From: Hemiscyllium ocellatum
Lineage: Eukaryota
NCBI RefSeq assembly: GCF_020745735.1
Contig: NC_083409.1
Span: forward strand, 19,116,341 to 19,180,340
DNA length: 64,000 nt
Reading direction: 5' to 3'
The notes beneath the pieces were generated by a model. It had not been told where the DNA came from and did not search any database. It saw nothing but the letters and a program-made list of their open reading frames with translations. Position 1 is the first letter of the stretch. Each line of letters begins with the position of its first letter. Below, piece by piece: positions 3,248-56,276 of this stretch. The translations under genes were made by a program, and so were the position numbers.

Positions 3248-3361
3248 GGGTGCAGGGGCAGGGGCAGGTGCAGGGGCAGGGGCAGGTGCAGGGGCAGGGG
3301 CAGGGGCAGGTGCAGGGGCAGGGGCAGGGGCAGGTGCAGGGGCAGGGGCAGATGCAGGGGC
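3248..3361 (+). repeat. G-rich 6-bp tandem array (GCAGGG/GCAGGT) x about 19
   Basis: Read directly; expanded from a CR1-internal GGGTGCAGG motif. Confidence 0.95.
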
Positions 3362-4254
3362 ATTATTCCTTGACAGTGAAGTCACAGGGAGACAGGGAGA
3401 TGAAGAAGGTGTTGGGTACACTTGCTTTATTGGTCACTGCACTAAGTGTCAGAGTTGGGACATCATTTGCAGCTGTACAGGAAATTTGGGAATAATGTGA
3501 ACAATTCTGATCATCCTGTGATATGAAGGATGCTGTTAAACTTAAAATTCTTCAGAAAAGATTTCCATGGATGTTGCCTGGAACTGGAGGGTTTGAGCTG
3601 TCGGAAGAAGCTCAATAGACGGGGTATTTTTCCTGCAGGATCGGAGACTGAGGGGTGGCCTTATAGATGTTTATAAAATCATGACGGGCATGGACAGGGT
3701 GTATATCCCAGGTCTTTGCCTTGGGAAAGGGAATCCAAAACTAGAGGGTATAGGTTTAAGATGGGAGGCAAAAGATCCAAAAGGGACCTGAGGGGTAACT
3801 TGTCACACAGAGGGTGGTGCGTGTCCGGATCGAGCTGTCAGAGAAAGTGCTGGTGACGGATACAATTATAACATTTAAAAGATGTTTGGATGGGTACATG
3901 AATAGGAAGGGTTTAGAGGGATGTGGGCTAAATGCTGGCAAATGGGATGAGGTCAGTTTTGGATATCTAGTTAGCATGGAGAGGTTAGACTGAAAGATCT
4001 GTTTCCACGCTGTCTGACTCCGTGACCATTAGAGGCTGGAAAAACTGAGATCTTTTACCCTGAAGTGCCGGAGGCTGAGGAGTGACCTTATAGAGGTTTA
4101 TAAAATCATGAGGGACATAAATAATGTGAATAATACAGGAAGGAGGTGAATGTTTTGTAGAGCTGGCAAACATATGCACAAAGATCATTCCAGGGAAGAG
4201 GAATATCAGTTATGAAGATAGATTGGAGAATTTGGGACTGTCTTCTTTGGAGAA

Positions 4255-4456: not shown

Positions 4457-4854
4457 TCTTTGGAGAAGGCAGCGAGGAGAATTGTTCCAGAAATTCAAAA
4501 TCAGGAGGGGGCCTGGAACAGAGTAAATAGGGAGAAAATGATTCCACTTGTGAAAGGATTGAGACCGAGAGGCCACAGATTGAAAGTAATTGGAAAAGTA
4601 AGAAAAGTGAGATGGGGAACAACATTTCAGTCAGTGAGTGGTTAAGGTGTGGAATGCACTGCCTGAGAGTGTGGTGGAGGCAGCTTCAATTGAAACATTC
4701 CGAAGGGAATGAGACTGTTATCTGAAAAGGAACAATGTGCAGGGTGACAGGGAGAAGGCAGGAGAATGACACTCAGTGAATTGGTGATTTGGAGAGCTAG
4801 TCCAGACAGGATGGACGGAATGGCCTCTTGTGCACTGTAACAGTTCTGTGATTG

Positions 4855-5110
4855 TGTGATTGAGCAGAGTTAAAGCTGGGGGAGGTGGGAGCTCGGTGTC
4901 TCACTGTGCTGCTGCTGCTGCTGCTGAGGTCAGTGAGATCAGAGACTGGGACAGGGAGCCAGAGCTCACATCAAACTCTGCCCGTGTCCATCACACTGAG
5001 ACTGGCAGGAGGCTACTCACTGATTTCACTCCATGCTGCAGGAATGGGACCACAGGCTGCAAATGGACAGAGCTCTTCCACATGGTGAGTAAAACTTACT
5101 GACTTATATC
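4855..5110. other. Highly conserved J-C intron block, cluster 1 copy
   Basis: Only about 4 substitutions plus a (CTG)n length difference vs revcomp of 36845-37120. Confidence 0.7.
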
Positions 5111-5301
5111 TTGCTTTTTTTAAAGAGGGCATGAAAGTAAAGAAATACAACTGGACACCCTGCTAAACACAGTGCTCAAGTCAAACAACCATTTCATTCA
5201 CTGCAGCTCCCCACTAACACCTTCAACAAATCAGTAACTGTATTTTAGAAAGTGTGTTTCAGTTTGACAGGGTTAATAACAGAGGATTGAAGTTTACTTA
5301 C

Positions 5302-5336
5302 TCAGTCTGAGCTTGGTTCCTTTACCGAACGTGTAC
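5302..5336 (-). CDS. IGKJ: Ig kappa J segment 1 (YTFGKGTKLRL-S)
   Basis: FGxG motif, 35 nt, followed by the GTAAGT donor and preceded by the 23-RSS. Confidence 0.96.
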
Positions 5337-5375
5337 CACAGTGAGAGCTCCCAGTGCAGAGGCTGTACAAAAACC
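5337..5375 (+). other. 23-bp-spacer RSS of J1
   Basis: CACAGTG(5337-5343)-agagctcccagtgcagaggctgt(23)-ACAAAAACC(5367-5375), facing the V1 RSS. Confidence 0.98.
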
Positions 5376-5806
5376 TCAGCTCTCTGCTTCCCTCTTATCA
5401 CTGTCAACCTCTCTCTGTCTCTGTCTGTCTCTCACTCACTCTCACCCTCTCCCTGCCCCTCTCTGTCTCTCCCTCATTCATGTGTCTTTCTCTCTCTGTC
5501 TCTCTGGGTCGTTTCCAGCTGGGCTCGGGAGGTTGGTGAAATTTATTTTTCGATGTTAAATCTTGCAGCAGGTTTTCACATGTGGCTATAGAGTGTAAGA
5601 GGGAAACTAGAGGCCTTCAGTGAGTGTTGAAACACCACAGGGATTGGAGTGTGTCGTGGACAGTGGCAATCCCAGTTTGAGGTAATTTGATCAGCTTCAT
5701 TTAGATCTAACTGGATATGTCAGTTCAGGTGGTGGGACAGTGTGTCCATTATCATACATTTTATGTAACTGTGGGATGTGTCAGGAGGTAGTGCTTTATG
5801 TATTGA

Positions 5807-5834
5807 GGTTTTTGTACAGCTCTGTGTCACTGTG
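5807..5834 (-). other. 12-bp-spacer recombination signal sequence of V1
   Basis: Minus strand CACAGTG-acacagagctgt(12)-ACAAAAACC, perfect consensus. Confidence 0.98.
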
Positions 5835-6133
5835 TCGAGGGGAGCTGTAAACTTGCTGACAGTAATAGTCAGCGACATCCTCATTCTGAACGTTGCTGAT
5901 TTTCAGGGTGAAACTGGTCCCTGATCCACTGCCGGTGAATCGATCGGAGACTCCTGTGAATCGATTTGTTGCATAATAGATCAGGAGAGAGGGTTTCTGA
6001 CCTTCTCGCTGCTGGTACCAGTTAACATAGTTGCTAACAGATTGACTGGCCGTACAGGTGAGTGTTGCGGTCTGGTCCAGTCCCACTGACAGCACTGGGG
6101 GAGACTGGGTCATGCTGATGTCCCCACTGATAC
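5835..6133 (-). CDS. IGKV: Ig kappa V segment 1, unrearranged ([23 protein letters not shown]...[15 protein letters not shown]...[15 protein letters not shown])
   Basis: Acceptor CCCTCAG| at 6134; open frame with both Ig cysteines, WYQQ and YYC; ends directly at a CACAGTG heptamer. The sequence type matches shark NS4/kappa V. Confidence 0.97.
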
Positions 6134-6319
6134 CTGAGGGGTCAGAGAGAAACACAGTGAAGTCAGAACTGTCACAGAAAGAGCCTGTCAAATGAGAGAT
6201 TATTGGAGACACTGAGCACTCCTCTAGTTTCAGTATTTTCCCTTCAATCACAAGTCAGTGGAATTGGAGTGAAATGGAGAGCAGGGAAAGATTCAAGGTG
6301 GAAGGAGAGAGATTTGTAC

Positions 6320-6368
6320 CTGCGACACAGAATGCCAGGGCCCAGATCAGCTGGATGTGTGAAATCAT
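6320..6368 (-). CDS. IGKV: Ig kappa cluster 1 leader exon (MISHIQLIWALAFCVA-G)
   Basis: ATG at 6368, 49-nt hydrophobic exon ending G|GTACAA (phase 1 donor); near-identical to the cluster 2 leader. Confidence 0.93.
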
Positions 6369-6428
6369 GGTGTGTGCTCCTGTCCCTGTGCCTGGTTCCA
6401 GATAAACTCTCCCTTCACTGGACTCTGC

Positions 6429-6520
6429 TTTATAAAGCTGCAGCCTGTGAGAGTCTGACTGGGTGTTCCTCAGTATGTAAATGGCATCAGGCAGAGAGAG
6501 CCACGTCCTCACACTTCCTC
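6429..6520 (-). promoter_or_regulatory. V1 promoter: TATA (6429-6436), variant octamer ATTTACAT (6475-6482), PU box GAGGAAGT (6513-6520)
   Basis: Motifs read directly, with the same spacing as in cluster 2 (TATA about 60 bp before ATG). Function is inferred from known Ig V promoters. Confidence 0.75.
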
Positions 6521-7574
6521 TTCTCTCTCTTTCTATCTCACTCTCTCTGTCTCAGAGTCATTGATGTGAACAGCAGTGAATGAGGCCATTTGGCCCATTG
6601 TGTCTGTGCTGGTAAACAAAGATCTGATGACACTAATCCCATCCTCCAGCTCTTGGCCCGTTACCCTGGGAGCTACAGCAACACAAGGGAATATCTAAAC
6701 ACTGCTCCAATGTCACGAGAGTTTCTGACTCAACCAGCCTTTCAGGCAGTGAGTTCCAGACTCCCACCACCCTCTGGGTGAAAACATTTCTTCTCAACTC
6801 TCCTCTCACTCTCCAACTCGCCTGGCCATGGACTCACTCGTGTTCAGAACGATGAGAGGGGATCTGATTGAAACATATAAAATTGTAACAGGGCTGGGCA
6901 GGGAGGAGGTTTCCCCTGGTTGGGGAGTCTGGAACCAGGGGACACAGGCTCAGGGGGATACAGGGTAGACCATTTCGGACTGAGATGAGGAAACATTTCT
7001 TCACTCAGAGAGTGGTCAACCTGTGGAATTCGCTACCACTGAAGGCTGTGGAGGACAAGGAACTGAATATATTCAAGAAAAAGAGAGAGATAATTGTTTT
7101 GCATTTTAACAGCTTGAAGAGAATGGGGAGAAGGCAGGAATATGGCTTTGAGAGAGAGGATCAGCCATAGATCATAGAATGCCTACAGTGTGGAAACAGG
7201 CCATTTGGCCCGACAAGTCCACACTGACCCTCGAAGAAATGATGACATTCAAAAATTGATACAGCCATGATCATACTGAATGACAGAGCAGACTCAAAGG
7301 GCCGAATGGCCTACTGCTGCTCCAAGTTTCTACGTGTCCGTGTCTGTGTTACCTTCGATCTCTGTACCAGATTATGAAGTCCTTTACTCATGTCAAATGT
7401 GCCATCCTACCCAACCTGTCACTGTCCTGAATAATCCTATCCCTCTCTATCAGGTCCCTTTTAAGCCTTCACTGCTCAAAGCTCACATTCAGGCAGCATC
7501 CTGGGAAATCTCCCTGTACCCTCTCAGGTACAATCACATTCTTCCCAGAGTGTGGTGACCAGGACCTGTCCCTC

Positions 7575-7653
7575 TCTCTCTTTCTCTGATTCACATCTGC
7601 CATTTCTTTCTCTCTACCTCTATCTCTCTCTCCCAATGTTAATCTCTTTCATG

Positions 7654-7716
<63 letters not shown>

Positions 7717-8330
7717 CACACACACACTCACTCTGTCTCATAGCCACATTCTCCAACTCACTGATGCTTTCTGACTACATCTTATCATCTGTTTCGCCAT
7801 CTCTCACTGTCTCTGTTACTCGCTCCCTCTCTCACTTCATTTAAAAGCCTCCAATTGTTATCTGTCACTCTCTATTCCTCCCTCTTTCTCTCTCCTTCCC
7901 TCTCTACCTCCCAATTTACAGTCTCTCTCCCTCTCTCTCTGTCATTATAAATCTACCCATACTCATCTCTCTCTCTCACACTCAACCCTACCCTCCCTCT
8001 CAACTCTCTTCATGCTTAGTCTCACACCCATCCTGTCTCTCACTCTCTCTCTCTCTCCTTGTCTCTTTGTCTCTCTCCATCCCTCTCAGTCACACTGTCT
8101 CACATTTTGTTTCTCTCTCTATCCCTCAACCTCACCATTTCTACCTCCCTCTACCTCTCTCTTGGTCCCCTCACATATCTTACACCGTATCAGATGCTCG
8201 TCCCTCTATCTCTCTCTCTCTCATTCTTTCTTTCTTTCTCTCTCTCTCTCTCATACACACACACACACACACACACACACTATTTTTCCCTCCATCTCTC
8301 TCTCTGCCTCACTGCTCTCTCTTTCTGACA
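7575..8330 (+). repeat. CT-rich low-complexity tract with (CT)n(CA)n microsatellites; mirror GA-rich tract at 34150-34500; other (CT/AG)n runs at 16620-16660 and 56240-56272
   Basis: Read directly. Confidence 0.9.
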
Positions 8331-9199
8331 GTGTCCTGGGTGGTGACAGTTGAATGCAGGATAAATCTCCCTCTGCTCTGTCCCACTAATGGATGTTAAC
8401 ACTTGACCCCTGTCTTCTCCTGGAGGAAGGCCCTATTTCCACGTTGACCAGGGTTTGGCCTCTCTCAGGAAGATGGACAGATTCTGGTCAAATGAAGGGC
8501 AGTTCTGTGCTGTTCTGTGCTGTTGGCCTATTCTCACTGGGGACTGATTTGGACACAAACCTCATTCTGTGAAGGCCTAGCAGAGAGAGGAGATCCTCAG
8601 ATCATCAGCGTGAGTTGGAGGGACAGGACAGGCTCTGACCCACTGACCCATTCACAACATATTCCAATCCCTTCCCCTCTCCTTCCCCTCTCCTTCCCCT
8701 TCCACAGTCAGTCTTGTCTGAAATGGAGTGGTCCCTTCCCTGTCTCACACCAAGGAGGAGATGAACAGATATTTAATGGGTAATGGGTTAAAGGATGATG
8801 GAGAGTGGGCAGGAAAGTGGAGTTGAGTCTGAGATGGGATCAGCCATGATTGTATTAAATGGTGGAGTGGGCTTGAGGAGCTGAAATGCCTGCTCCTGCT
8901 CCTAGTTCTTATGGTCCTCCACCCTCTCCCCCATCCCTCTTACTGCAACTTTGTGAACATTCTTGGAATGTTTGGACATTGAAGGCGCTATGTGAATTCA
9001 AGATTGGTGTGGATTCAATGTGGGGACAGAATTGTGCACGGGCTGTGATAGCTCCTGCGGTTGAATATCCTGCTGGCAGGCTTCCGCCTTCCATATACAG
9101 AATGGGGAAGTGGGGGAGGTCGGAATGTACTGCCGGGGTACACGGCGCTGTCCTCTAGCAATGTGGTTGACTCTCTAGTGCCCTCTGAAATGGCCGAGC

Positions 9200-10480
9200 A
9201 AGGCTCTCAGTTGTGTCAATTATGACAATGTTTCAACAAAGAAATGAGACCGGACGGGCCACAGGCATCGATCTAGACACCGAAAAGACAATGACAGAAA
9301 CAGCCCTGTCTACCCTGCTCCATCCTCCTTACTGACATCTGGGAGCTAGTGCCAAATTCAGGAGAGCTGTCTTACAGATGACTCAAGCAACAGCCTGACA
9401 CAGTCATACTCACAGAACCATACCTTACAGACAATGCCCCAGACACCACCATCACTGTCCCTGCATGTGTCCTGTCCCACTAGAAAGGAAGACCCAACAG
9501 AGCTGATGACACAGTGGTCTACAGTCAGGAGGGAGTTGCCCTGGGAAGTCTCAAAGTTGGCTCTGGACCCTGTGAAGACTCATGAAACTAAGTTAAAAAT
9601 GGGCGAGGAAACCTCCTGGTGATTACAAGATATCTTGCTCCCTTGGCTGATGAATCAGTCTCTCCTGGATGTTGAACAACATTTGGAGGAAGCACTGAGG
9701 GTGATGACAGCAGAGAGTGTACTCTGGGTGGGGGGTTTCAATGTCCACCACTGAGAGTGGCTCGGCAGCAGCATTACTGATCGAGCTGGTTGGTTCCTCA
9801 TGGATGTAGCTGAGGGACTGGCTCTGCAGCTGGAACCAAAAAGATGGAAAAAGATGCTTGACCCCATCCTCACCAATCTTGTGGCTGTAGATGCATCTAT
9901 CCTTGACAGTATTGGTAAGAGTGACCATCAACACAGTCCTTGTGGAAACAAAGTCTGACCTTCACATTGAGAATCCCCTCCATTGTGTTGTGTGGTACTA
10001 TCACCGTACTAAATAGGACAGACTCCGAACAAATATTGCAACTCAAGGCAAACTCGTAAATGAGGATGATTGCCAAAGATTGCACAATGTTCAGCACTAT
10101 TCTCAACTCCTCAGATACTGAAGCAGTCCACGTGCAAATGCAACAATATCTAGACAATATCCAGGTTTTGTCTGAGAAGTGACATTTCCCATTGGTGCCA
10201 TGCAAATGCCAGCCAATCACCATCACCAATAAGAGACAATCTTAACATCGCCCCTTGACAATCAATGCTATTACCATCACTGAATCCCTACTATCAACAT
10301 TCTTGAGGTGCCATTGACCAGAAACACAACTGGATTCACCAAAGAAACACAGTGGTTACAAGAGCAAGTTAGAGGCTAGGAATACTGCATCGAATAACTC
10401 CCCTCCTGATCCCCGCAAAGCCTGTCAACCAAGTCAGGAGTGTGAGCAAATACTCCCCACTTGCCTGGACAGGTGCAGCT
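9200..10480 (+). mobile_element. Second non-LTR family, APE endonuclease region with internal deletions
   Basis: KQQPDTVILTE.YLTDNAPDTTIT.P and VLWVGGFNVHH-type endonuclease remnants; a related independent fragment lies at 30650-31250. Confidence 0.7.
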
Positions 10481-11584
10481 GCAACAACATTCATAGATTG
10501 ATAGTGTCACAGAGTCATACAGCACAGAAACAAACCCTTCAGCCAAACTTCTACATGCTGACCAGGTTTTCTGAAGTGAACTCATCTTATTTGCCTGCAT
10601 TTCACACATATCCCTTGAAACCTTTCCTATCTATGTCTATTGTATCCTATGTCTTTCTTATCCACTCAAAAAGCTTGATACCATCCAGAGCAAAGCAAAC
10701 TCCTTGATTGTCATCACATTCTCAAAGTTTTCAAACTCACCGTCACTAATGCTCCATAGCAGCAGTGTGTATTATCGATAAGAAGCACTGCAGAAATTCA
10801 TCACTGATCTTCAGATAGCACCTTCCAAACCCATGGACAAAAATAGAAAGTGCTGAAAAAGCTCAGCAGGTCAGGCAGCATCTGTGAAGAGAAATCAGAA
10901 TTAACATTTCGGGTTGAGCATGAAATATTAACTCTGATTTCTCTTCACAGATGCTGCCAGACCTGCTGAGCTTTTTCAGCACTTTCTATTTTTATCTCGG
11001 ATTTACAGCATCTGCAGTTCTTTTGGTTTCCCTCCAAACCCACGTTCACTTCCGTTTAGAACAAGAGCAGCAGATACATGGGAACACTGTGAGCTGCAAG
11101 TTCCCCTCGAAAAAGCTTAGCATCCGGACTTGGAAATATGTCGCTGATCCCTCAGCCTTGCTGGGTTAAAATGCTGGCATTGTGGGTCAACTTACAGCTT
11201 GTGGACGACAACAATTCAAGATGGCAGCTTCCCACCACCTTCTCCAGGGCAACTAGGGACAGGGTAAAAAATGTTGGCCCAGCCGGTGAAGCCCACTTCC
11301 CACAAGTGAATATGCAAAACCAAATGAAGTGTTCCTCAGGAGGGGAGAGGGAATGTTCAGGATCCTGAACTCCATTTCCCAGCCCAGGCAGTTTGTCTCC
11401 CAATGAATGAATGAGATGCCAATTTGAAGCCCAGGTTCAGGGCAGTCTCACTCTGTGGACATGAGGTCTATAAGAAGGAATTGGAGATTGAGCTATAAAG
11501 GAAAGATTTGCTGGGTTACGGGGAGAGAGGGGGGAGCAGTGGGACTAACTGGATCATTCAAAGGCATGATGGGCTGAATGGCCT

Positions 11585-11960
11585 CCTCCTGTGCTGTCAG
11601 TTTCCAGGGAGTGCAGACAGTTCACAGTTTTCTCCCGTCTCAGTAACAAACGTCCAGCTGCTCTGAGCTCCTTCTTTCACTTCCTCTGTTGGTGAAGTTT
11701 CAACCTTGTGATCTGACAGCCTTTGCAGTTATTTTTTACACTGGGGCTTTCTGTTGTGGTCAGAATCTCTAATAATAAGTGCCCAATCAGTGACAATCAC
11801 AGCAGCTAAGAGCTGTCAGGACTGAGGAGCCAGGCTCACTGGGAAACACATTGGGAAGATCAAAGCCATCCCCTTCAGCTCCTGGTACAAGCTCCATCCC
11901 TCTCCCTGAGCACTGTCTGCTGCTCAACCAGACTCTTTACAACTTTGGCCTCATCTTTGG
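11585..11960. promoter_or_regulatory. Candidate lymphoid enhancer ~5.2 kb upstream of V1
   Basis: About 95% identical (hand count) to revcomp of 30135-30515. Holds E-box CAGCTG 11655-11660, EICE (GGAAGTGAAA on minus) 11675-11684, Runx TGTGGT 11755-11760 and MEF2 CTAATAATAA 11769-11778. Confidence 0.55.
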
Positions 11961-13089
11961 GGCTGATTTGAGGCCCAAATCCTCCACATCACAATTATCA
12001 GCCACTGAAAATCTCAACCATGTTTTTGTGACCATTCCAATATTATCTAGGCCCACATCACAGCCACTGCCTTCCGTAAACATCAGCTCATCCCAAACTC
12101 TGCTGTCTATGTTCAAACTCACTCCAAGTCCACTCCATACCCCTGCCCACACCTCCCCATCACACCATAACCACCACAATCCTCACTGACTGACATAAGC
12201 TCCTGGTCCAGGAGCACCTCGATTTTCAAATCTCATCCTTGTTCTCAATCTGCTCCCTGTTCTTCCACCCTCCCTATCTCTGTGACCTCCTCCAAGCTGC
12301 CTCACTCAGTGTGATCAATAATCTTGGATATATGGCTCTCTGTTTCTTCATCCAAATCATTGAGAATTATCGTGAAAAGCTGAGGTCCCAGCACAGATCC
12401 CTGGGAATACCACTACTCACATCTGGCTCAATGGAACACACACACGTTATCCTTCCTCTCTGTCTCCTAGACAGACCCATTCCTGACCCAAGGTAAATGC
12501 ATTTCTCAAATTCCATCTAATTCCATGATTTGGAGATGCCAGTGTTGGACTGTCGTGTAAATGTTAAAAATCACAGAACACCAGGTTCTAATGCAACAGG
12601 TTTGTTTGGAAGCATTAGCGTTTGGAGCGCTGCTCCTTCATCAGATGGTTGTGGAGTGTAAGATCTGAATCAATGTTTCTTTTGTGGAACATTCTTAAAT
12701 GTCTTTTGGAATTCCCTATAGACAATAGCCATCGACATTCCTTATATCCCACACTAGTGATCTCCTAAGAAAGTGTAACCCGGTTAGTTAAGATGTCTGA
12801 ACCTTTGTCAATCCATGCTGATTCTCTCAGACCAGTTCATATTTGTCCGTTATTCTGTCTCTAAAAACAGACTCAATCACTTCCTGACAACAGACATTCA
12901 ATGGAGATGTTCATTGTAATTGAGGCTCGTAAACAGCTAGCACTGACACGAGGGGCTGAACAGCCTCCTCCTGTGCTGGCACCTTCTCTGTCTCCTGGAC
13001 GGAAATATTTTACAGATTAAAAACTAAAGACCAGCAGCAAATTTTAAAATATAAATTAAAAACTCCTCAAATAATTTCCACATACAGGG

Positions 13090-16000
13090 CCAGGCGATGT
13101 GTAGTAATTGTACGATGGGGAAGCTGGTGGAGCCCATTGTAGCTCAGAGTGACCACATCTACAGCAAGTGTTGGTTGCTCAAAGCACTCCAGCTCAGAGT
13201 TGATGAGCTGGAATCTGAGCTTCAAACACTGTGACACATCAGGGAGGGGGAGAGTTACCTGGACATTGTGTTTGGGGAGACAGTCACACCTTGTAGGTTA
13301 AATACTTCAAATTATGGCCAGTGGTCAGGAACAGGCGGGTGTGACCAAAGATAAACAGGTCAATGCAGCCTGGACAGCCTTACAGGTGCCTCAGCTCCTT
13401 GTCCAACAGGAATGAGATACTTGCTCCCTGTGTCAATGAGGAAAAGGATTGTCGAGAGAATGGGCAAATGTAGTTTGAGGATTTTGGTGATAGTGACCAT
13501 AACTCTGGAAATTTCAAAGTCATTATATAAAAAGATCAAGATAGAGCAGAAATTATAATGTCTAAACTGGGGAAAAAGTAGGGATGTGTAGGTTAGGTGC
13601 ATTAGCCATGGGAGATGCTGATTTACAGGGATAAGGTAGGGAGACAAGTCTGGGTGGGATGCTCTTCAGAATGTTGGTGTGGACTCATTGGTCTGAATGG
13701 CCTGTTTCACACTGTATGGATTCTATGATTCGATGACTCCTACGGGCAGTCATTGCTGGCTTGGCCAGAGATGTCCATTTCCTATGAATGAACGAAGGAA
13801 ACCACTGAACCATGGTCCAGGAGGCCACTCAGACTGGGGGAGCACAAAGAAAAGAGGGGTCTTGATAATGAGGAAACTGATAGCATCCTTTATGAGCAGG
13901 ATTGAGAGCCCCACATGGTGTGTTGCCTGTCTGGTTTCAAGGTAAGTGCATCTCGAGCCGGCTTTTAAATATAACAGACTTGGGGGGCGGGGAGGTGGGA
14001 GGAGGTGGGGTGCGGGGTTGAGGATCCAGTTGTTGTTGTATGTGTTGGGACCAACAACATCAGCAAAAATCGGCAAAAGCTCCTATTTGGACAATATCAG
14101 GAAAGCTATCAGAAGGATATTGATTAAACAGATGGAGAGAAATAAGAAAGAGGTGAATACAGCATCAGTGCTGAGGAACAGATTCCAGTGAATGGACCAA
14201 ATAAGAGTTCTATATACGAATGCACGGAGTGTAAGGAATAAATACAATAATCTGCAGGAACAAATTCACATTTAAGATTGTGGTATCGGATCAATTACTG
14301 AGCCATAGTTGCAGAATCATTCAGATTGGGAACGATATCTATCGGGTTAGAAGGTTCACAGGATGGATATAGGGAAATGGCAGAAGAGGTGGAGCAGCTT
14401 TATTGATGAGGGAAAAAATGGCTTCAATGGTGAGGGAGGTCATAATGAGGAGAAAACATTCAGTGGGACTGAGGAGCAGGAAAGGATCGAAAACTGTAGT
14501 AGATGTTGGATACAGACCCCCTGACAGCAGCTCTGAGGTGCTGGATTATATAAATGGAGGAATTAGACAAGTGTGTAGCAAAGCCAGTGTATGATTAATG
14601 GTGAAGTTTAACTTTAACTTAGATTGGGAGACAGACAAGCCCTCTGTCAGAAAGGTAGTGAATTGCTGCTGTGTGTCCAGAATAGTTTCCAACAGCAATA
14701 GGTCCTGGATACAACAAGGGGACAAGCAATATTGGAATTAGTAATGAATAATGAGCCAGATTTAGTTCGTAACTACTTGTGCATGAATATTTATCAAATA
14801 GTGATCATAACATGATCTAGTTCAGTGTCGCATTTGAAAGTAAAAAGCATGAATCAGCTGCTAGAGTTTGAGTTTAAGGTAAGGCCGACTTTAACGAGAT
14901 GAGACAGAGACTGTCCACAGTAAACTGGGAAAATCTGCTCATGGGTAAAACAACTGAACAACATTGGGGAATATTTAAAGGAACATTCAACACAAAGCAA
15001 AGCCAGTTTATACCTGAGAGGGAAAAGCGAACAAACAACAATGGTCAATTAGAGAGATAAGGGAAAGAATAAAATGTTTAAAAAAAAGGCATACAGAAAA
15101 GCAAAAAATAAGGACAGATTCCGCTGAATGGGAAGGATACAAAAGGGCCACATATCAGCTTCTAAGAGCTACCAAAGGTGATTCTGAAAGGAACCATGTA
15201 AGGGATAACAAAATCAATAAGGAGAAATGTTACAGTTCCATAAAAGGGAAGCTGGGAGGTCAGTAGCAATGTTGGCCATTAAAGACTGAAAGTGACAATG
15301 GGAAAATGACAGACATGTTAAATAAATACTTTACCTCAAGATTTGCAGTAGAAAAGGAAGAGGACTTGCCTGAAGTCCCAAAGGAATTAACAGAGGATCT
15401 GTGTCAGGGACTGATGAGATTCCCTGCAGTGTGCAAACATGCCTTTTGGCCCAACCAGTCCACACCGACCCCTCCGAAGTGTAACCCATCCAGGCCCATT
15501 TTCCCTCTGACTAATGCACCTAACACTATGGGCAATTTAGTATGGCCAATTCACCTGACCTGCACATCTTTGGATAGTAGGAGGAAACCCGTGCAGACAA
15601 TGTGCAAACTCCACACAGGCAGTTACCCAAGGCTGGAATTGAACCTGTGACTCTGGTGCTGTGAGGCAGCAGTGCTAACCACTGTGTCATCTGAATGAAG
15701 TTAATGTTAATATAACATGTGTAATAAGGAAAATAATGGAACTAAAGAGTGACAAATCCTCAGGACCTGAGGGTGATAAAGTAGAAATAGACCACATTGC
15801 AGACGCCCTGACTATAATCTTTCAGAGTTACCTGGATTCAGGAGTCATACCTCTGAATTGGAAAATTGCAAATTTCACTTCACATTTAACAAGGATGTTA
15901 GAGAAAAGCCAGGGAATTACAGGTCACTGAGCCAGCGTTTGTGGTGTGGAAATTGTTGTAGTCTATAATCAAGGATGGGGGTAACTGAAGACCTTGAAAA

Positions 16001-17109: not shown

Positions 17110-20052
17110 AAACTTGCCATTGGGTATAATCCATTAAGTGTGATAAATACAGAAACTCGCTTAGTTCTAGTTGTCAGTGAGTTCTTGTCAACATTCTTTT
17201 AACAAATCAATTTTATACAAGAATGATATACAACAAACCCTCTCTATACAACCTTCTCAGCTGGGAATAGGGAATGAATCTGGTTTTGTGACGAGACCAC
17301 ATTCCTCGAGTCTACACAGAATTAAATTGAACAGTTTGGTTCAGAAGCCAATACTACAGGAGAACGCCAATTACTCTGATATGGTTCAATCAGCTGATTC
17401 TCCAACATGGAAGCCCTCTGTTCCATCGCCGGTTTCGGTTGGTTTTTGTTTTATTTTGTCTGAATTACCAAATTCATGTTATATTTGATTCATGTGGTAG
17501 ATCTAAGTGTATCAATACAAGTCCACAAGATAAAGGAGCAGAATTGGGCCATTTGGCCCATCATGTCTGATCATTTACAGTTGATAATGTTTCTCAGCTC
17601 CAATCTCTTCCCTTTTCCCTGTAAATCTTGATCCCTTGACCAATCAAGAGCCAATCTATCTCTTTGTTAAATACACTCAATGAATTGGCCTCCAAGGCCA
17701 TCTGCAGTTCCACAGATTAATGACAATCTGGCTGAAGAAATTCCTTCTCAACCCAATTCGAAAGATCGTCTCTTCACTCTGAGTCTGTGCCCTCGGGTCT
17801 CCTACTCTCCAATTATTAGAAACATCTCCTCCATGTCCACTCTATCCAGGCCACCCTGTATTCTGTAAGTTTCAATGACATTCCCTCTCATCTTTCTAAA
17901 CTCCATCAAGTACAGAACCAAAGTCCTCAAAGACTCCTCATACAAACACCTTTGTATTGTCTGAGCAGCCTCACTAAATCTACCTGTTGATCTTTCTCCA
18001 GATTCAAAAATACAGCGTCTGAAGTCTCAAATATCTCTGAATTTGTTCATGTAATAACAGGAAGTTACTTTGGGAAGTGTCCAGGTCTTTTTTGATCTCA
18101 AGCTTTTTCTGATCCCCTCCTCTATTATACTCTCTACTTGACAAACCTGTACATGATGGGATGGTTCCTCAAAAACTGGGAGAGGAATTAAGGATGCTGG
18201 TTTTGTATTGAGGTTTACCTATAACTTGACAAGTAAGACACGCTTTATAAAACTGCACCACATCTTTAACCAATTGTGGCTCAGTAAAGTACCTGTTTCT
18301 GGATGCCTGTGTTTTCCAAATCCCCCTGTGAACTGCCATGGGAGTCTCATGTGCCCCTTGTACTATCTCCCTATGATAGCTGGGTGGGACCACTAGGCAA
18401 TGTCTAACCGACCATTCTTCATCTGGGGGTCTATGAGTGGGTCTCCACTTCCTCATCAGCGCTCCATTCTGAACACAATAACACTCTGAAATTCCTTCGG
18501 CCTCGACCTCAGTATGAGCTGACTGTGCTCATTTATTTCATTCAGGATCTGCTTTTTGGATCTGCTGCAATTAATGACATCATACCAACCACTCCACCTG
18601 GATTATCTTCACCCTTTCGGAAAGTTTCAGCGATCCTTTCACTTGCTGTGGTGTCACATCAACCCTTATTGATGGATTTTGTTTAACCATTGCCCTGGTT
18701 ACCTCACACGAAGGAGAGAGACCAGGAACCTGTTCCTGTCATTGTTCTGTTTCTTGGCCCTCCTTTGGACATTCTGTAATTATCGGGGAAGCTACTGCCT
18801 TTAGTCCTGACAAACCATTCCCCAGAAGGAAATCGACTCCTTCAACAGGGAATGTTTTCCCATTCCAACAATTACTTCTCCTGATAACAAATCACATTCC
18901 AGTTGTACTGTATACAATGGAAGTGGAATATATTTTCCACCAATCCCATTGATTAATACCTTAGCTACCATTGAGCTCTCTGGAGGGAAAATCAACTCTT
19001 TCACCAGTAAAAGGGACTGTGTTGCTCCTGTATCTCTCAGTTTGGTTCTGGGTTTAGCTGAAGAAAAAGGCGTCACCATTCCTTTTGATAAAAGTCCTGT
19101 CCACCTCTCATCTACCTGACAACCTCCTTTACTAATGACAGAATTCACCTCCAGCCTTTTTGTTATAGTTACAGCTACAACCTGCTCTGTGGGATTATCT
19201 GTTTGGGTTGCCCTCTCTGACTCATTTTTACGAACTCCCATAAATCCCATGGGTTTACCTCACAACTTCTAACATTCCAAACATACATGGCCCACCTTAT
19301 TCCAAGAGAAAAATTTCAGCTTCTGATCATCACTTCCACCCTCACCAATTTCCTTCTTCATCTGAGGAGGAGTTCTTGGGCTGTTCCCTCCTGTCCATTC
19401 TCTCCCCTGGCTATCTACCTTCCTTAGACTCTCCCAATTTTTATTTTTCTCCCATTTCTGGGCCTGATGGGAAAAAGGTTTCTGGATCGGTCTCCCATCA
19501 GGTGACTTCCCCACCTCCTGATGCTGCTTGGCTTGTTGTGCTCTTCCTGCCTCCTGTTTGTCTACTTTGGATTCCAGCATCTGCAGGGTTTTGGTTTTAA
19601 CAAAGTCTACAATCATTAGCCATTCTAGCTGCTTGTCTTACTGTCGTTCCCCTTTGGTCATCTACATGAATTCTGATTCTAGAAGGGAAGGAAGTTCTTC
19701 TCAAAGGATAACTTCTCTGAGAGCATTGTAAGTATTCTCAGCTGTTAATGCCCTTATCCACCTGTCAACATTATTTTGTTAAACTCTCTTAAACTCAGTA
19801 GAGATTTTTCCAGGCTGTTGTGTAAGTTCTGAAACATCTCTCTGTAATGTTTCTGGAGCCAACTCATATGTGCTTAGAATAGACATTTTCACCTCCTCAT
19901 GATTCCGAAAATATTCCTCTGACAGGGATGTAGAAACCTCTTGTGCTTCCCAAGTTCATTTTTGCATGGGCAAGGTCCAACCTGTTTTTCCCACCTCCCT
20001 GATGTTGCTATCTTCTGAAACAACATGAAAAATGCTTCCATATCCTTCTCTT
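17110..20052 (-). mobile_element. Degenerate Gmr1-like Ty3/Gypsy LTR retrotransposon (gag/SCAN-like, CCHC knuckle, protease, integrase Zn domain, RT)
   Basis: Hand translation: EEKDMEAFF (gag, ~20040), NKVGHVCLEC knuckle (~19290), LRDTGATQSLL protease (~19040), GVDFLLGN, AHETPMAVH...CLTC integrase H2C2 (18456-18170), MLENQLIEP.QSNW.SPVVL...FCVD and KPDSFPIP...KIDLLK RT (17420-17150). Many stops and frameshifts; integrase core missing. Confidence 0.85.
17520..17940 (-). mobile_element. CR1-type LINE 3' fragment nested inside the Gmr1-like element
   Basis: Typical LINE 3'-end sequence; the Gmr1 reading (…RQYKGVC | IDTLRSTT…) resumes across it. Confidence 0.7.
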
Positions 20053-29280: not shown

Positions 29281-30134
29281 CTTTGAACTGAGGAAGCTCT
29301 AAGGAACAGAGTGATCTTGGGGTGCTTCTCCACTGATCCCTGAATATGGCAAGACAGGTTAACAGAGCAGTTATGAAGGCATAGGGGACACTTGCCTTTG
29401 TCATGTCAGGTATCGGTTTTAAAAGCAGGAGGATATGCTGCAGTTAAGTAGAACATTGGTGAGGCCACAGCTGGAGTACTGTGTGCAGTTCAGGTCACCA
29501 CACTGTAGGAAAGATGTGATTGCACTGGATGGGGCGCAGAGGGGAATCACCAGATGTTGTGTGGGATGGAAACTCTCAGTGATGAAGAGAAATTGGATCA
29601 GCTCGGGTTGTTTTCTTCAGAGCAGAGAAGGTGGAGGGGGGACCTGATCGAGGTGTATACGGTTATGAGGGGAATGGACAGGGAGGAGAGAAAGCAGCTG
29701 TTCTCCTTCTTGGGAGGGTCAATAACAAGTTGGCTCACATTCAATGTCAAAGATAGGAGGTTTCAAGATGTTTTGAGGAAAGTGTTTTTTACCCAGAGGG
29801 TGGTGGGGGTCTGGAATGCACAGCCTGGGAAAGTAGTTGAGGTGGGAAACCTCACAAACTTTAAAAAGTACTTGGTGGTGAACAGTTGAAATATCATAAC
29901 ATTCAAGCTATGGGCCACATGTTGGAAACTGGGATGGTATAGTTTTAGTGTAGTTTGGCTGGTACACAGTTAATGGGCTGAAGGGCCTCTTCTACACTGT
30001 GTGATTTTATGATTCTGTTGTGTGCAGTTTTGGTTTCCTTATCTGAGGAAGGATGTTCTGGCTGTGGAGGGAGGACAGCGAAGGTTTACCAGACTGATTC
30101 CTGGGAGGACAGCATTTAGATCTGATGAGAAACT

Positions 30135-30515
30135 GGATTGGTGAGGCCAAGTTTGTAAAGAGTCTGGCTGAGCAGCAGACAGTGCTCAGGGAGAGGGATG
30201 GAGTTTGTACCAGGATCTGAAGGGGATGGCTTTGATCTTCCCAATGTGTTTCACAGTGAGCCTGGCTCCTCAGTCCTGACTGCTCTTAGCTGCTGTGATT
30301 GTCACTGATCGGACACTTATTATTAGTGATTCTGACCACAGTAGAAAGCCCCAGTGTAAAAAATAACTGCAAAGACTGTCAGATCGCAAGGTTGAAACTT
30401 CACCAAAAGAGGAAGTGAAAGAAGGAGCTCGGAGCAGCTGGATGTTTGTTACTGAGACGGGAGAAAACTGTGAACTGTCTGCGCTGCCTGGAATCTGACA
30501 GCACAGGAGGCTGGT
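30135..30515. promoter_or_regulatory. Candidate lymphoid enhancer ~5.1 kb upstream of V2
   Basis: Mirror copy of 11585-11960: MEF2 30317-30326, Runx ACCACA 30335-30340, EICE GGAAGTGAAA 30411-30420, E-box 30435-30440. Confidence 0.55.
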
Positions 30516-32164
30516 TCTGGGATTTTTCTTTTCAGAAACAGCACAGTGATGGAAAAAAGGACAGTCACTCTCTCACAAACACACACGCCTGCACTCGGAG
30601 ATCAGAAACAGAATCCAGCAGCAGCTCTGTCTCCAAGCTGTGGAACCTGCACAGAATTGTTCCCTCATTCAGTTTTTAACTGGCAGGATAGACCAAGCAG
30701 GGGAGGCAACACAGTAGTGTGTACAGTCGGAAGGGAGTTGTCCTGGGAATCCTCACCATTAACTATGGAATCCATGAAGCCTCATGGCAGCAGATCAAAC
30801 ATGGGGAAGGAAACCTCCTGCTGATTACCACATAGCACCGCCCTCCCCTCCAACCTCAACTGAGCAGTCAGTCCTCCTCCATGTTGACCAACACTTGGAG
30901 GGAGCACTGAGGGTGGGAAGGATGCAGGATATACTCTGAGTAAGGGACTTCAAAATCCACCATCAAGAGCTTCTCAGAAGCATCACTACTGAGCAAGTTG
31001 GTCAAGTTCCACCTGATTCAGCTGCTAGACTGGACCTGGGGCAGGTGGTGAGGGAACCAACATGAGGGAAAACCATACTCACCATCACCCTCACCAATCT
31101 GCCTGCTGCTGGTGTATATGTCTATGACAGTATCAGTAAGGGTGACCACCGCACAGTCCGTGTGGAGACAAAATCCCATCTTCACATTGAGATTGCCTTG
31201 CATTTTGTTGGGCAAGAGATATGGGATGTCAGGAAGAACTTTTTTTAGCAGCAATTGGTAATGACTTGGAAATTAGTGCCCATTCAGGTGAGGCAGGTGA
31301 AGACACTCAGTGATTGCAATGGCAGATTGGATGGGCTCTTGATGGAAATAAACCTGCAAGGCCCTGGATGTCGAGTAGGGGAGGGGGTGGGACTGACTGG
31401 ATTGCTCCATGAAATGACAGCATTTACACACTTAGTCTCACCTTTACACAAAGACAGGGAGAAACAGACAAACCAGTTCACAGAAGTGTTTTCTCAAGCA
31501 AAACACTCTTGAACCAACTCAGAGAACACACCAGTCTAGATTTACTAGAATAAATCAGCAAATCAATGGCAAGGGAACAGCGACCCAAAAGTGTTGGAAC
31601 TGAACAGTATATTCAATATCACAAACAACGAGAGAGGGAGGGATGAAGGGCAGGAAGGTAGAGAGGGTACTCTTAGGGTCTGAAGGCTCTGCTGTCAATG
31701 GTGGGATGGAGGAAGCAACAATGGGCAGGAGACCAGAGACAGAAGGTGGAAGGGGGAGGGAGGGAATGTGAGTCTACAGCAGGACACAGAGTGAGGGGGG
31801 AGGGAGGCCATGGAGGCAATTGGCTGGCAGTGAGGTCAGATTCTGGAACAACTGTAGTTGTGAGACAGGGAAGGGATCGCTCCACATCAGACAAGTTGGG
31901 GTTTATGGAATGTGGCTTCAGGAAGCTGGGAGAGGACATTGAAATCATAGAGTCAGGAGGTGGGATGAGCAGGAATTGGGGTTTCTGTGGTCAAGAGACT
32001 GAGGTAATGCAGAGACAAACAATGTTGTGCAGATTGAAATAAGGGACCTGGGTAATGGACAGGATGTGGGGTTCACAGCTCAGATACTGGACAGTCCGGT
32101 GGGAAGGAGGCCCATGTTTACTGTTTATTGGTCCTATGGGAAGGTGCCCCATGTTTACATCATC

Positions 32165-33410
32165 ATAGAGTCATAGAGGTTTACAGCGTGGGATCAGGCC
32201 CTTCAGCTCAACTCATCCATGCCGACCAAGTTCCCAAAACTGAACTAGTCCCATCTGCATGCGTTTGGCCCAATCCTCTCTAAATCCTTCCTATCCATGT
32301 TCCTGTAAAAATGTCCTTGAAATCTAGTAATTGCACTCCCCTCTACCATTTCCTCTGGCGGCTCATTGCACATACACACCATCCTCTGTGTGAAAAAATT
32401 GTCTCTCAGGCCCCTTCTAATTCTTTCCCCTCTCAACTTAAACATATTCCTTCTCATACTGGACTCTCCTACCCTGGGGAAAAAAAAAACTTTGGCTATT
32501 CACCTTATCTATGGCCCTAATGATTCTATAAACCTGTCTAAGGTCACCCCTCAATCTCCTGCATTCACTGGAAAAATCTCTCGGACTATCCATCCTCGCC
32601 TTGTAATTCAAACTCACCAACCTTGGTAACATCCCTGTTAACCTTTCTTTTATCCAAACCAGTGTAATAACTTCCTTCCTATAGCAGGGTAAATAGGAAT
32701 GTACACAGTGTCCAAATGTAGCCTTACCAATGCCTTGTACAGCTGTAACATGATGTCCCAGCTCCTGTACTCCCTGCTTTGACCAGTGAAGGTGAGCGTG
32801 CCAAATGCCTTCTTCACCATCCTGTCTACCTGTGACACCACTTCCAAGGAACTATGCACCTGTACCCCTCAGTCTCTCTGTTCAACAACACTCCCCATGG
32901 CTCTACCATTAATTATGTAATTCCTGCCCTGGTTTGTCTTACCAAAATGCAACTCCTTGCATTTATTGAAATTAAGCTCCATCTGGATTTGTTGACCCAC
33001 TGACCCAGTTGATGAAGATGACATTGCATTCTTAGATAATCTTCTTACCTGACCACGATGCCAACAATTTTAATGTCAGCCACAAACTTACTGACCATTC
33101 CTGCTATTTTCTCATACAAATTGTTCATGTAAATGATGAACAACAGTGGATCCAGGATCGATTCTTGTGGCAGATGGCTGGTCACTGGCCTCCAGTCTGA
33201 AGATCAACCCTCTCTCACCAGCCTCTGCCTCCTACCATCAGGCCCATTTTATATCCAATTGGTTAGCTCTACCTGGATCCTCTGTGATATAATCTTACTA
33301 AGCAGTCTACAATGGGGAACCTTGTCTAAGGCCTTGCTAAAGTCCATGTCGATGATATGTACTGATCTATCTTAAGCTATCTATTTCTTCAAAAACTCAA
33401 CTATCCACTT
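32165..33410 (-). mobile_element. CR1 LINE 3' half inserted into a ~43-bp minisatellite
   Basis: RT-to-3' end remnants with a (CTATGA) tail at the left edge; the GGAGGCCCATGTTTAC repeat core occurs on both flanks. Confidence 0.75.
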
Positions 33411-33436
33411 GTCACCATTAGAAGGACAAGTGAATA

Positions 33437-33680
33437 GGAGGCCCACATTTACTGGTCTTCTTGGAGTATCCAGTCAGAAGGAGGTCCATGTTTACTGGTT
33501 TCCTTTGGAGAGTCCATAACGAAGGAGGCCAACATTTATTGGAGGCTCAAGCAGGAACAATGCCCATGTTTACTGGTCTCTATTGGGAGCTTCAGTGGGA
33601 AGGAGGCCCATGTCTCTCCATGGGGCACTCTCGTGAACTGACGTCCATGTTTACTGGACTCTGTTGGAGAGTCCAGTGCA
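33437..33680 (+). repeat. Degenerate ~43-bp minisatellite, about 6 units (2 more cores at 32104-32158)
   Basis: Recurring core AGGAGGCCCATGTTTACTGG. Confidence 0.8.
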
Positions 33681-35463
33681 GCGTGAACACCATGGTGGGT
33701 GTGGGGTTCAGTTCCTTTCTGTTGTAACTGTGTGATGGTCCAACCCTCATCCCAGTAAAACACACTGACTCAGAGACTGATCGTGGAAGGGGAAGGACAG
33801 GGGAAGGGATTGGAACATGCTGTGAATGGACAGGATGGGTCAGTGGGTCAGAGCCTGTGCTGTCCCTCCAGCTCACACTGATGGCCTGAGGATCTCCTCT
33901 CTCTGCTGGGCCTTCATGGAATGAGGTTTGTGTCCAAACCAGTCCCCAGTGAGAATAGGGCAACAGCACAGAACTGCCCTTCATTTAACAAGAATCTGTC
34001 CATCTTCCTGAGAGATACCAAAACCTGGTCAATGTGGAAATGGACCTTTACTCCAGGAGAAGACATGCTTCTGGGGTCAAGGGTTAACATCCATTAGTGG
34101 GGCAGAGCAGGGAGAGATTTATCCTGAATTCAACTGTCACCACCTGGGACACTGTGAGAAAGAGAGAGAAGTGAGACAGAGAGAGAGAAATAGAGGCCGA
34201 GTGTGATGCGGAGAACGAGGGAGAAACAGAGGGAGAAATAGAGAGGGGTAGATAACATTTGGAGGCTTTCAATTGAAGTGAGAGATGGAGCGAGTGACGA
34301 AGACAGTGAGAGATGGAGAAAGATTATGAGACGGAGTGAGGAAGCGTGAGTGAGTTGGAGAGAGTGGCTATGAGACAGAGTGAGAGAGAGGGAATATGAG
34401 AGAGATTAACAGTGGGGAGAGAGATAGATGTAGAGAGATCAAAGTAGCAGATGTGAGACAGAAAGGGGAAAAGAGAGAGAGAGAGAGAAAGGTCCTGATC
34501 ACCACATTCTGGGAAGGATGTGATTGTACTTGAGAGGGGGCAGAGGAGATTTCCCAGGATGCTGCCTGGGATGGAGGGTCAGCTATGAGGAAAGACTGGA
34601 AAGGTTGGGGCTGTTTTCCTTGGAGCATTGAAGGTTGAGAGGGACCTGATAGAGAGGTATAAGATAATTGTTGGCAGTGATATGTTGCATAGGAAGGCAC
34701 TTTATACAAGAGTAAAGGACTCAATAACCAGGGACAGAGATTGAAGGTAACACAGACATGGACACATTGAAACTTGGAGCAGGAGCAGGCCATTCGGCCC
34801 TTTGAATCTTATGTGTCATTCAGTATGATCATGGCTGATCCTCTCTCTCAATGCTGTGCTGCTGCTTTCTCCCCATTTCCTTCATGCTGTTAAAACGCAA
34901 AACAACTCTTTTCTTTCTTGAATATATTCAGTTCCTTGTCCTCCACAGCTGTTTGTGGTAGAGAATTCATCAGGTTGACCATTCTCTGAGTGAAGAAATG
35001 TTTCCTCATCTCAGTCCTAAATGGTCTACCCTGTATCCCCCTGAGCCTGTGTCCCCTCGTTCCAGACTCCCCAACCAGGGGAAACCTCCTCCCTGCCCAG
35101 CCCTGTTACAATTTTATGTGTTTCAATCAGATCCCCTCTCATCCTTCTAAACTCGAGTGAATCCAGGCCCAGTTGAGTTGCAGAGTGAGAGGAGAATTGA
35201 GGAGAAATGTTTTCACAAAGAGTGTGGTGGGAATCTGGAACTCACTGCCTGAAAGGCTGGTTGAGTCACAAACTCTCGTGACATTGGAGCAATATTTAGA
35301 TATTCCCTTGTATTGCTGTAGCCCTCAGGGTAATGGGCCATGAGCTGGAGGATGGGATTAGTGTCATCACATCTTTGTTTACCAGCACAGATACAATGGG
35401 ACAAATGGCCTCATTCAGTGCTGTTCACATCAATCACTGTCTGAGACAAAGAGAGAGAGAGAA

Positions 35464-35620: not shown

Positions 35621-35669
35621 ATGATTTCACACATCCAGCTGATCTGGCCCCTGGCATTCTGTGTTGCAG
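35621..35669 (+). CDS. IGKV: Ig kappa cluster 2 leader exon (MISHIQLIWPLAFCVA-G)
   Basis: ATG at 35621, donor G|GTACAA at 35670, 186-bp intron to the acceptor CCCCTCAG at 35855. Confidence 0.93.
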
Positions 35670-36590: not shown

Positions 36591-36629
36591 GGTTTTTGTA
36601 CAGCCTCTGCACTGGGAGCTCTCACTGTG
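36591..36629 (-). other. 23-bp-spacer RSS of J2
   Basis: Plus strand GGTTTTTGT-23 nt-CACTGTG; spacer identical to the J1 spacer. Confidence 0.98.
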
Positions 36630-36664
36630 GCTTACGTTCGGTAAAGGAACCAAGCTCAGACTGA
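36630..36664 (+). CDS. IGKJ: Ig kappa J segment 2 (LTFGKGTKLRL-S)
   Basis: FGKGTKL motif, GTAAGT donor at 36665; phase 1 matches the C exon acceptor. Confidence 0.96.
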
Positions 36665-46517: not shown

Positions 46518-46846
46518 GCCGTGACAACTCTCAGCCCAAACTGACCCTGCTGCCCCCCTCCCCGGAGCAGGTCAATGCCAAGGGCACTGCCACCCTGGTG
46601 TGCCTTGCCAATCACTTCTATCCCGATGAGCTGGAGGTGCAGTGGAAGAAGGACGGTGCAGTCATTTCGGACGGGGTTCAGACCAGCAACTACCAGCAAG
46701 CTTCGGACAGCACCTACAGTGTCAGCAGCCTGCTGACCCTCTCTGGGGCTGACTGGGAGTCCAACGCTCACTTCTCCTGTGCCCTCACCCACGTGACCCT
46801 CCCTTCTCCCCTCAGCAAGAGCATCAGGAGATCAGAATGTGTGTAG
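46518..46846 (+). CDS. IGKC: Ig kappa constant exon of cluster 2 (S-RDNSQPKLTLLPPS...TLVCLANHFYPDEL.VQWK...YSVSSLLTLS...FSCALTHVTL...RSECV*)
   Basis: Polypyrimidine acceptor CTTTCAG|; in frame with J2 (A|GC = Ser); C1-set Cys/Trp/Cys and C-terminal interchain Cys; J-C intron is 9853 bp. Confidence 0.97.

Positions 46847-56234: not shown

Positions 56235-56276
<42 letters not shown>

Follow-up and report, generated by a model that had tools for sequence, protein, structure and literature searches.

The window analysed here is a 64,000-nucleotide stretch of the Hemiscyllium ocellatum genome (contig NC_083409.1, positions 19,116,341 to 19,180,340 of the forward strand) that contains an inverted duplication, each arm of which (arm A and arm B) carries one unrearranged immunoglobulin (Ig) kappa-type V-J cluster, the two clusters lying head to head. 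About 5 kb upstream of each V gene stands a copy of the same short block of DNA, and its sequence suggests that the block is a cis-regulatory module of each kappa mini-cluster, most likely a B-lineage enhancer, a reading to which we assign a probability of about one half. The evidence that carries it is the recurrence of the block upstream of other kappa V genes, the retention within it of an ETS-IRF composite at a fixed distance from an E-box, and a substitution rate below that of the transposon relic adjoining it. For comparison we used five loci, L001 to L005, reached via protein searches for annotated shark kappa genes; L004 is from Stegostoma tigrinum and the others are from Chiloscyllium punctatum.

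The two copies in the window are reverse complements of each other and have sharp ends:

11585..11953, minus strand (gene orientation): arm A copy of the block; the arm A ATG lies 5,217 bp downstream
30142..30510, plus strand: arm B copy of the block; the arm B ATG lies 5,111 bp downstream

Over 369 nt they agree at 349 positions (94.6%) and differ by 20 substitutions, with no insertions or deletions (indels). The original prediction had described an island of ~370 bp, ~95% identical between the arms and situated ~5.2 and ~5.1 kb upstream of the ATGs; length, identity and distances all hold on measurement, but its ~19 differences are 20 by our count and its mirror interval of 30135-30515 is a few bases too wide. 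Alignment of six copies places the true unit at ~30158-30487. The last ~20 nt at the gene-proximal end are the 3' tail of a repeated element of the long or short interspersed type (LINE/SINE), whose tail signature GGAGGCCATTCRGCCC occurs 6 times in the window against 0.08 expected. This element continues directly from the block in arm A (11584-11324), in L001, in the forward L002 copy and in Stegostoma, so the relic was already present in the common ancestor. It provides an internal neutral control:

11324..11600, plus strand: ancestral transposon relic abutting the arm A block, its 3' tail overlapping the last ~16-20 nt of the block

A search of 11200-12600 returned no Rfam match to the block up to E=1. 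A protein-coding exon was considered and rejected, since every frame of the five copies translated (all except Stegostoma) contains at least one stop and usually several.

Linkage of the block to kappa clusters

Contigs of four public runs were aligned with positions 30000-35999, with variants counted up to 128 and with a summed depth that is not a copy number. In the DNA-type runs each variable site of the block is represented by 12-35 contig variants, and the summed depth over the block is ~1,250-2,700 in organism A and 8,000-14,000 in organism C. The V exon has 15 variants at a depth of ~1,250 in organism A and ~7,900 in organism C, whereas the transposon positions between block and V exon reach 95-122 variants and depths 5-100 times higher. 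These values indicate that the copy number of the block is comparable to that of the kappa V exon. Because summed depth is no copy number, the linkage rests mainly on contig placement and on the number of variants; variants and depth alike follow the V exon rather than the transposons, which answers the objection, anticipated in the original prediction, that the block might be a dispersed repeat unlinked to Ig genes.

The only second copy in the 64-kb window is that of the paralogous arm. In 115 kb of fetched loci the block was found only upstream of kappa V genes, plus one copy that faces outwards:

L001 (C. punctatum), 3268-3615: block, 94.6% identical to arm B, ~6.4 kb from V
L002 (C. punctatum, germline-joined VJ gene), 4935-5296, forward: block, 77% identical to arm B, ~4.7 kb from V
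L002 (C. punctatum), 1365-991, reverse: block, 75% identical to arm B, facing outwards
L004 (S. tigrinum), 7295-7634: block, 87.5% identical to arm B, ~2.3 kb from the ATG

Looking upstream of other kappa clusters and in another elasmobranch, the check that had been proposed, thus recovered the block in gene orientation in both C. punctatum (L001 and L002) and S. tigrinum. Its distance from V varies from 2.3 to 6.4 kb because transposons have inserted between block and gene. The outward-facing L002 copy is placed as if it served a head-to-head neighbour past the edge of the locus. Two further sets of contigs match the block at ~94% identity: those of organism D over 30142-30385 (14 differences in 244 positions) and those of organism E over 30169-30429 (15 in 261). 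L003 has just 2.1 kb of sequence upstream of V and was left out of the block comparison. In L005 the block was not found in the assembled 10 kb upstream of V, with an 884-N gap lying ~10.5 kb upstream; this locus (L005:12906-16230, BEZZ01001156.1) shares arm B upstream DNA from 30621 onwards, and its V exon is a pseudogene with several stops. That the only cluster lacking the block in its assembled 10 kb upstream carries a V pseudogene is a point in favour of the enhancer reading.

The L002 gene itself (L002:9839-11371, BEZZ01000502.1) is a germline-joined VJ kappa gene whose V frame leads directly into FGKGTKLQLSK, without a recombination signal sequence (RSS) between them. The two block copies of this locus stand head to head, 3.6 kb apart, mirroring the pair in the window.

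The DNA between block and genes had been taken for unrelated transposable-element insertions. The arms show no collinear match in 8689-11585 and 30510-33788, where LINE-like frames abound and contigs reach very great depth, but the description does not extend to the whole interval. The arm A flanks are ancestral on both sides of the block, being common to loci from other assemblies; arm B 30621-33613 is common to another C. punctatum cluster; and a further collinear block lies between the first block and the genes:

33788..34188, plus strand (arm B), and 8295-8689 (arm A): second block shared collinearly by the arms (91% identity), ~1.5-2 kb upstream of the ATG

This second block is 92% identical in L001 and 84% in L003 and L005, and no match to it was found in Stegostoma L004. 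RNA-run contigs of organism E lie over it as well.

Motif content, constraint and proposed function

Within the block, the best-conserved part is a core of ~150 bp, which in arm B is 91% identical to Stegostoma and 83-93% identical to the diverged C. punctatum copy. The core and the sites in and beside it are as follows:

30327..30475, plus strand: best-conserved core, arm B, holding RUNX, Myb-like, PU.1/IRF and E-box sites
11620..11768, minus strand: the same core in arm A, coordinates mapped via the gap-free alignment
30411..30420, plus strand: ETS-IRF composite GGAAGTGAAA of arm B, part of PU-box AAAGAGGAAGTG and retained by five of six copies
11675..11684, minus strand: ETS-IRF composite GGAAGTGAAA, arm A
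30435..30440, plus strand: E-box CAGCTG, arm B, 14 nt downstream of the composite
11655..11660, minus strand: E-box CAGCTG, arm A
30335..30340, minus strand (ACCACA on the plus strand): RUNX-type TGTGGT, arm B, kept in five of six copies
11755..11760, plus strand: RUNX-type TGTGGT, arm A
30316..30326, plus strand: MEF2-like CTTATTATTAG of arm B, retained by the three closest copies only
11769..11779, minus strand: MEF2-like site, arm A

Each of the motifs named at the outset (GGAAGTGAAA, CAGCTG at a distance of 14 nt, TGTGGT and CTAATAATAA) is found in both arms in the same form. It is likewise true that no difference between the arms touches a motif, but this is expected by chance: the motifs occupy 33 of 369 bases, and that none of the 20 differences falls in them has P=0.15. 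Arm-to-arm sparing therefore carries no weight as evidence of selection.

The comparison loci played no part in choosing the motifs. The ETS-IRF pattern GGAANNGAAA occurs, as GGAAGTGAAA inside AAAGAGGAAGTG, in both arms, L001, L002 forward and Stegostoma L004, and has decayed to GGAAATGAAG in the L002 reverse copy. The pair GGAAGTGAAA-N14-CAGCTG is found only in the blocks (expectation 0.00 in window shuffles) and is kept in five of the six copies, while an E-box of the form CASSTG stands at a constant offset from the composite position in all six; a RUNX site (TGYGGT) and a Myb-like site (TAACTG) are each present in five. The 14-nt spacing between ETS-IRF composite element (EICE) and E-box is invariant even in the forward L002 copy, which is 77% identical overall and in which 1 of 33 motif bases has changed against 86 of 336 others (P=0.001). 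Runs that are invariant among the first five aligned copies include CTGACCA, AACTGCAAA, TCACCA, CAGCTGGA, TTACTGAGA, GAGAAAA and TGTGAA; the run at the E-box is cut to CAGCT once Stegostoma is added.

The block was also compared with the contiguous transposon relic, and in each of three comparisons it is the better conserved of the two: 94.9 vs 86.3% identity (p=0.0002), 91.0 vs 83.7% (p=0.005) and 80.2 vs 72.8% (p=0.03). Substitutions in the block are 30-60% fewer than in this adjoining ancestral DNA. Relative to L001 the block is 94.3% identical and its ancestral flanks 79-86%. When substitutions alone are counted, the arms agree at 92.3% of positions in the V exon, 94.6% in the leader intron, 92.9% in the promoter and 86-91% across the J-C intron and the upstream DNA rich in transposons, and the 94.6% of the block falls in the top 5.5% of 369-nt windows of the duplication; gap columns make up ~3% of the alignment elsewhere and none of the block. 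We read the constraint on the block as moderate and concentrated in its ~150-bp core, below the far-above-background level that a view of two sequences suggests. The proposal that each cluster carries its own 5' enhancer is partly borne out, in that the block is cluster-linked and recurrent, changes more slowly than the relic and lies 5' of V; the constraint is weaker than had been claimed, and the enhancer still stands as a candidate.

If the block is such an enhancer, PU.1 or Spi-B together with IRF4 or IRF8 would bind the composite in the ~150-bp core, an E protein would bind the box 14 nt away, and RUNX and Myb-like sites would complete the assembly. The target of the factors bound to the core would be the V-gene promoter 2-6 kb downstream, with its octamer-like and TATA elements, and activation of this promoter would lead to transcription of the cluster and, in turn, to access of RAG to the V and J segments, which lie 0.4 kb apart. 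The block might also help to target somatic hypermutation. We infer factor binding, enhancer activity and the target gene alike from the sequence.

Alternative explanations for the block

A number of findings weigh against an enhancer. MEF2, part of the motif set first proposed, is not a conserved member of it: the MEF2-like sequence YTAWWWWTAR is present in both arms and L001 but is lost in three of six copies, through a 2-bp deletion in Stegostoma and also in both L002 copies. None of the six copies contains an NF-kB site (GGGRNWYYCC, either strand) or an octamer, and the outward-facing L002 copy is devoid of the EICE, RUNX and Myb-like sites. The arm-to-arm identity of 94.6% is within the range of other unique parts of the duplication (90-95%). 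In the comparison with Stegostoma, identity in the block (87.5%; core 91.3%) does not exceed that in the cluster introns (J-C intron 88.4%, leader intron 94.1%) or in the proximal promoter; because the Stegostoma introns are equally conserved, slow shark evolution could explain much of the similarity, and gene conversion from cluster to cluster could create a false impression of constraint. In L001 the block, still 94.6% identical, stands next to a V exon (L001:10200-10560) that has Tyr for the first canonical Cys (Cys23; TLTYKSS). Finally, the comparison covers six copies from at most three species.

Much of this fits the main rival, which is that the block is a neutral relic, a piece of ancestral intergenic DNA spared by transposon insertion and deletion, kept similar by slow shark evolution and perhaps by gene conversion, with motifs that are fortuitous. 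The chance-level sparing of motifs between the arms (P=0.15), the similar preservation of other unique parts and of the Stegostoma introns, the loss of MEF2 and the retention of the block beside the V gene without Cys23 would all be expected of such a relic, as would the lack of any enrichment of the generic EICE pattern across the window (6 matches vs 3.7 expected). It accounts poorly, however, for the presence of the block in five of six upstream regions examined, where nearly all the DNA around it has been replaced, for its lower substitution rate than contiguous transposon DNA in three independent comparisons, for the lack of any indel between the arms, and for the survival of the composite and E-box spacing in a copy only 77% identical (P=0.001). 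We consider a neutral origin unlikely, if still the explanation that competes best with an enhancer.

RNA-derived contigs bear on a second alternative, which we place behind the neutral relic and regard as improbable: that a non-coding transcript (sterile or germline) made upstream has its promoter or first exon in the block, with a TATA-less start driven by the PU-box and the cluster opened by transcription. Run X16 (organism E) has a V-exon depth above 1e5 together with the spliced leader-V joint; run X15 (organism D) has a similar V-exon depth, and no leader-V joint was seen in it. Contigs lie over the block in both of these RNA runs, at depths of 109 and 11, or 1/1,000-1/30,000 of the V exon. 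As runs of 106 and 142 million letters are too small for DNA carry-over to reach such depths, these contigs point to low-level transcription across the block in Ig-expressing tissue, a point that also counts in favour of an enhancer. Two other unique upstream segments, 33687-34160 and 34988-35462, have RNA-contig depths comparable to that of the block, so the signal is not specific to the block, which again counts against an enhancer. The evidence consists of contigs, which carry no strand, ends, start sites or level, and the RNA could be enhancer RNA, a sterile transcript from upstream or the product of weak, general transcription in the region upstream of the cluster. Perfect PU-boxes are typical of TATA-less haematopoietic promoters. 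The presence of one here (AAAGAGGAAGTG), the occurrence of the block in RNA contigs of two organisms and the coverage of segments between block and V, as expected of transcripts running from one to the other, agree with an upstream promoter. Against it, no splice joint of the block is among those listed, the contigs are collinear with genomic DNA, and the depth is a very small fraction of that of the V exon, at a level of RNA that active enhancers also yield.

The block could instead be another kind of control element, either a boundary, insulator or silencer between head-to-head clusters or a DIVAC-like element that targets hypermutation and does not raise transcription. This we rank third and think hardly probable. 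It would suit the two facing copies that lie between divergent clusters both in the window and in L002, and the DIVAC function of chicken and mammalian Ig enhancers requires sites shared in part with the block (E-box, MEF2, NF-kB and PU.1-IRF4; PMC3972084). Inspection by eye, with no matrix scan run, revealed no convincing CTCF-type site; in L001 and L004 the block occurs once, and the DNA retrieved for these loci contains no partner facing it; and of the sites required of a DIVAC, the block lacks NF-kB and does not conserve MEF2. That a transposable element or dispersed repeat landed near both genes by chance is very improbable: both block ends abut repeat-derived DNA, including the ~20-nt tail, and LINE, SINE and long terminal repeat (LTR) fragments are very abundant in the window, but contig variants and depth equal those of the V exon and stay far under those of transposon positions, the copies are confined to the paralogous arm and, in the fetched loci, to kappa V upstream regions and one outward position, and the block has no open reading frame and, in its aligned ends as judged by eye with no dedicated search run, no terminal repeats or target-site duplications.

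The kappa clusters of the window and known Ig enhancers

The two clusters that the block accompanies comprise the following segments:

6368-6320, minus strand: arm A kappa leader exon, with ATG at 6368-6366; the unit 5807..6368 also contains the intron, V exon and RSS
6133-5835, minus strand: arm A V exon
5834-5807, minus strand: arm A 12-spacer RSS
5302..5336, minus strand: arm A J-kappa coding segment, ends approximate
35621..35669, plus strand: arm B kappa leader exon, with ATG at 35621 and TATA-like TTTATAAA and octamer-like ATTTACAT upstream
35856-36154, plus strand: arm B V-kappa exon, in a unit that extends to 36182 with the 12-spacer RSS
36155-36182, plus strand: arm B V RSS, with heptamer CACAGTG at 36155-36161, 12-nt spacer and nonamer ACAAAAACC at 36174-36182
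36591..36664, plus strand: arm B J-kappa and 23-spacer RSS, with nonamer at 36591-36599, heptamer at 36623-36629 and J coding segment at 36630-36664
46526..46846, plus strand: arm B C-kappa exon, ~10 kb downstream of J

Both clusters are apparently functional. The V reading frames are open in arm A and arm B, and both promoters combine a TATA-like box with octamer-like ATTTACAT; in arm B, RNA-run contigs (run X16 only) give a spliced leader-V joint at 35666>35853 (cut +3) with GT..AG borders. The nearest database proteins are C. punctatum kappa light chains at 88-90% identity, followed by those of other sharks. The arms are collinear over 353-1312 / 38580-37629, 4463-7181 / 37511-34817 and 7262-7943 / 34837-34175 (A / B).

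Other features of the window can be noted briefly. The J-C intron of arm B contains an ETS-IRF-type match GGAACTGAAA at 37738-37747 (minus strand), for which no counterpart was matched in arm A, and the same ~10-kb intron holds an intact 463-amino-acid LINE reverse-transcriptase frame at 39627-41018 (minus strand). Protease and gag-like retroelement frames lie at 18801-19616 (minus strand) in the 18-kb transposon-filled spacer that separates the two blocks. At the right end of the window, 53908-57974 and 61167-63930 form a second set of inverted repeats, 75-97% complementary and bearing no V, J or C signature, which is probably a transposon-derived structure.

On paper, the block resembles the ETS-IRF/E-box class of light-chain enhancers by shared short motifs and their order, a likeness that speaks for an enhancer. 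Its position is unlike that of light-chain enhancers in the J-C intron or 3' of C, as all the clusters examined have it 2.3-6.4 kb 5' of the leader ATG. The composite GGAAGTGAAA is identical in core to the mouse lambda-B type site, and the composite of the mouse kappa 3' enhancer has the form GGAACTGAAA. The Ig-lambda enhancers of human, mouse and chicken share E-box, NF-kB, MEF2 and PU.1-IRF4 sites, to which mammals add an E-box downstream of PU.1; the kappa 3' enhancer shares the E-box, NF-kB and PU.1-IRF4 sites, and the shared sites are required for hypermutation targeting (Buerstedde et al., PMC3972084). Like the tetrapod lambda enhancers (mouse E-lambda 2-4 and 3-1, human and chicken), the shark block presents, in order, a MEF2-type site (in some copies), PU.1-IRF and a downstream CASSTG E-box. 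It differs from them in lying 2-6 kb 5' of V rather than 3' of C, in its lack of NF-kB and of the upstream E-box, in a MEF2 site that is not conserved among shark copies, and in being present once per mini-cluster rather than once per locus. With the mammalian kappa 3' enhancer, whose composite binds PU.1 and NF-EM5 (IRF4), it shares the kappa isotype and a core of ETS-IRF composite and E2A-type box; here the shark element differs by its upstream position, its GGAAGTGAAA form of the composite, its want of NF-kB and its conserved RUNX and Myb-like sites. Shark light-chain genes hypermutate. The block also shares with DIVAC elements the E-box, PU.1-IRF4 and CBF/RUNX-type sites and, in some copies, MEF2 (PMC3972084), though it is without NF-kB and does not conserve MEF2.

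In cartilaginous fish the Ig genes are spread over tens to hundreds of separate mini-loci, and the block bears on the question of how just a few are switched on in a given B cell. The searchable literature yielded no description of an Ig enhancer from a shark or other cartilaginous fish. Malecek et al., from the Hsu laboratory, proposed that infrequent formation of Ig promoter-enhancer complexes underlies heavy-chain exclusion in sharks, with no element named (PMC2435157). That a B-cell enhancer of its own stands 5' in each shark kappa mini-cluster, with the PU.1-IRF and E-box core of the tetrapod lambda and kappa 3' enhancers, is a tentative proposal that we hold to be possible but short of an even chance. 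As a short, alignable and cluster-linked module, the block nevertheless offers a concrete sequence to test and a direct comparison with tetrapod light-chain enhancers. If the proposal is correct, this would be the first Ig enhancer identified in cartilaginous fish, and the grammar of light-chain enhancers would be older than the split between cartilaginous and bony vertebrates, with the element placed upstream of V in the cluster organisation. The block could then be the element whose stochastic activation decides which cluster a B cell chooses.

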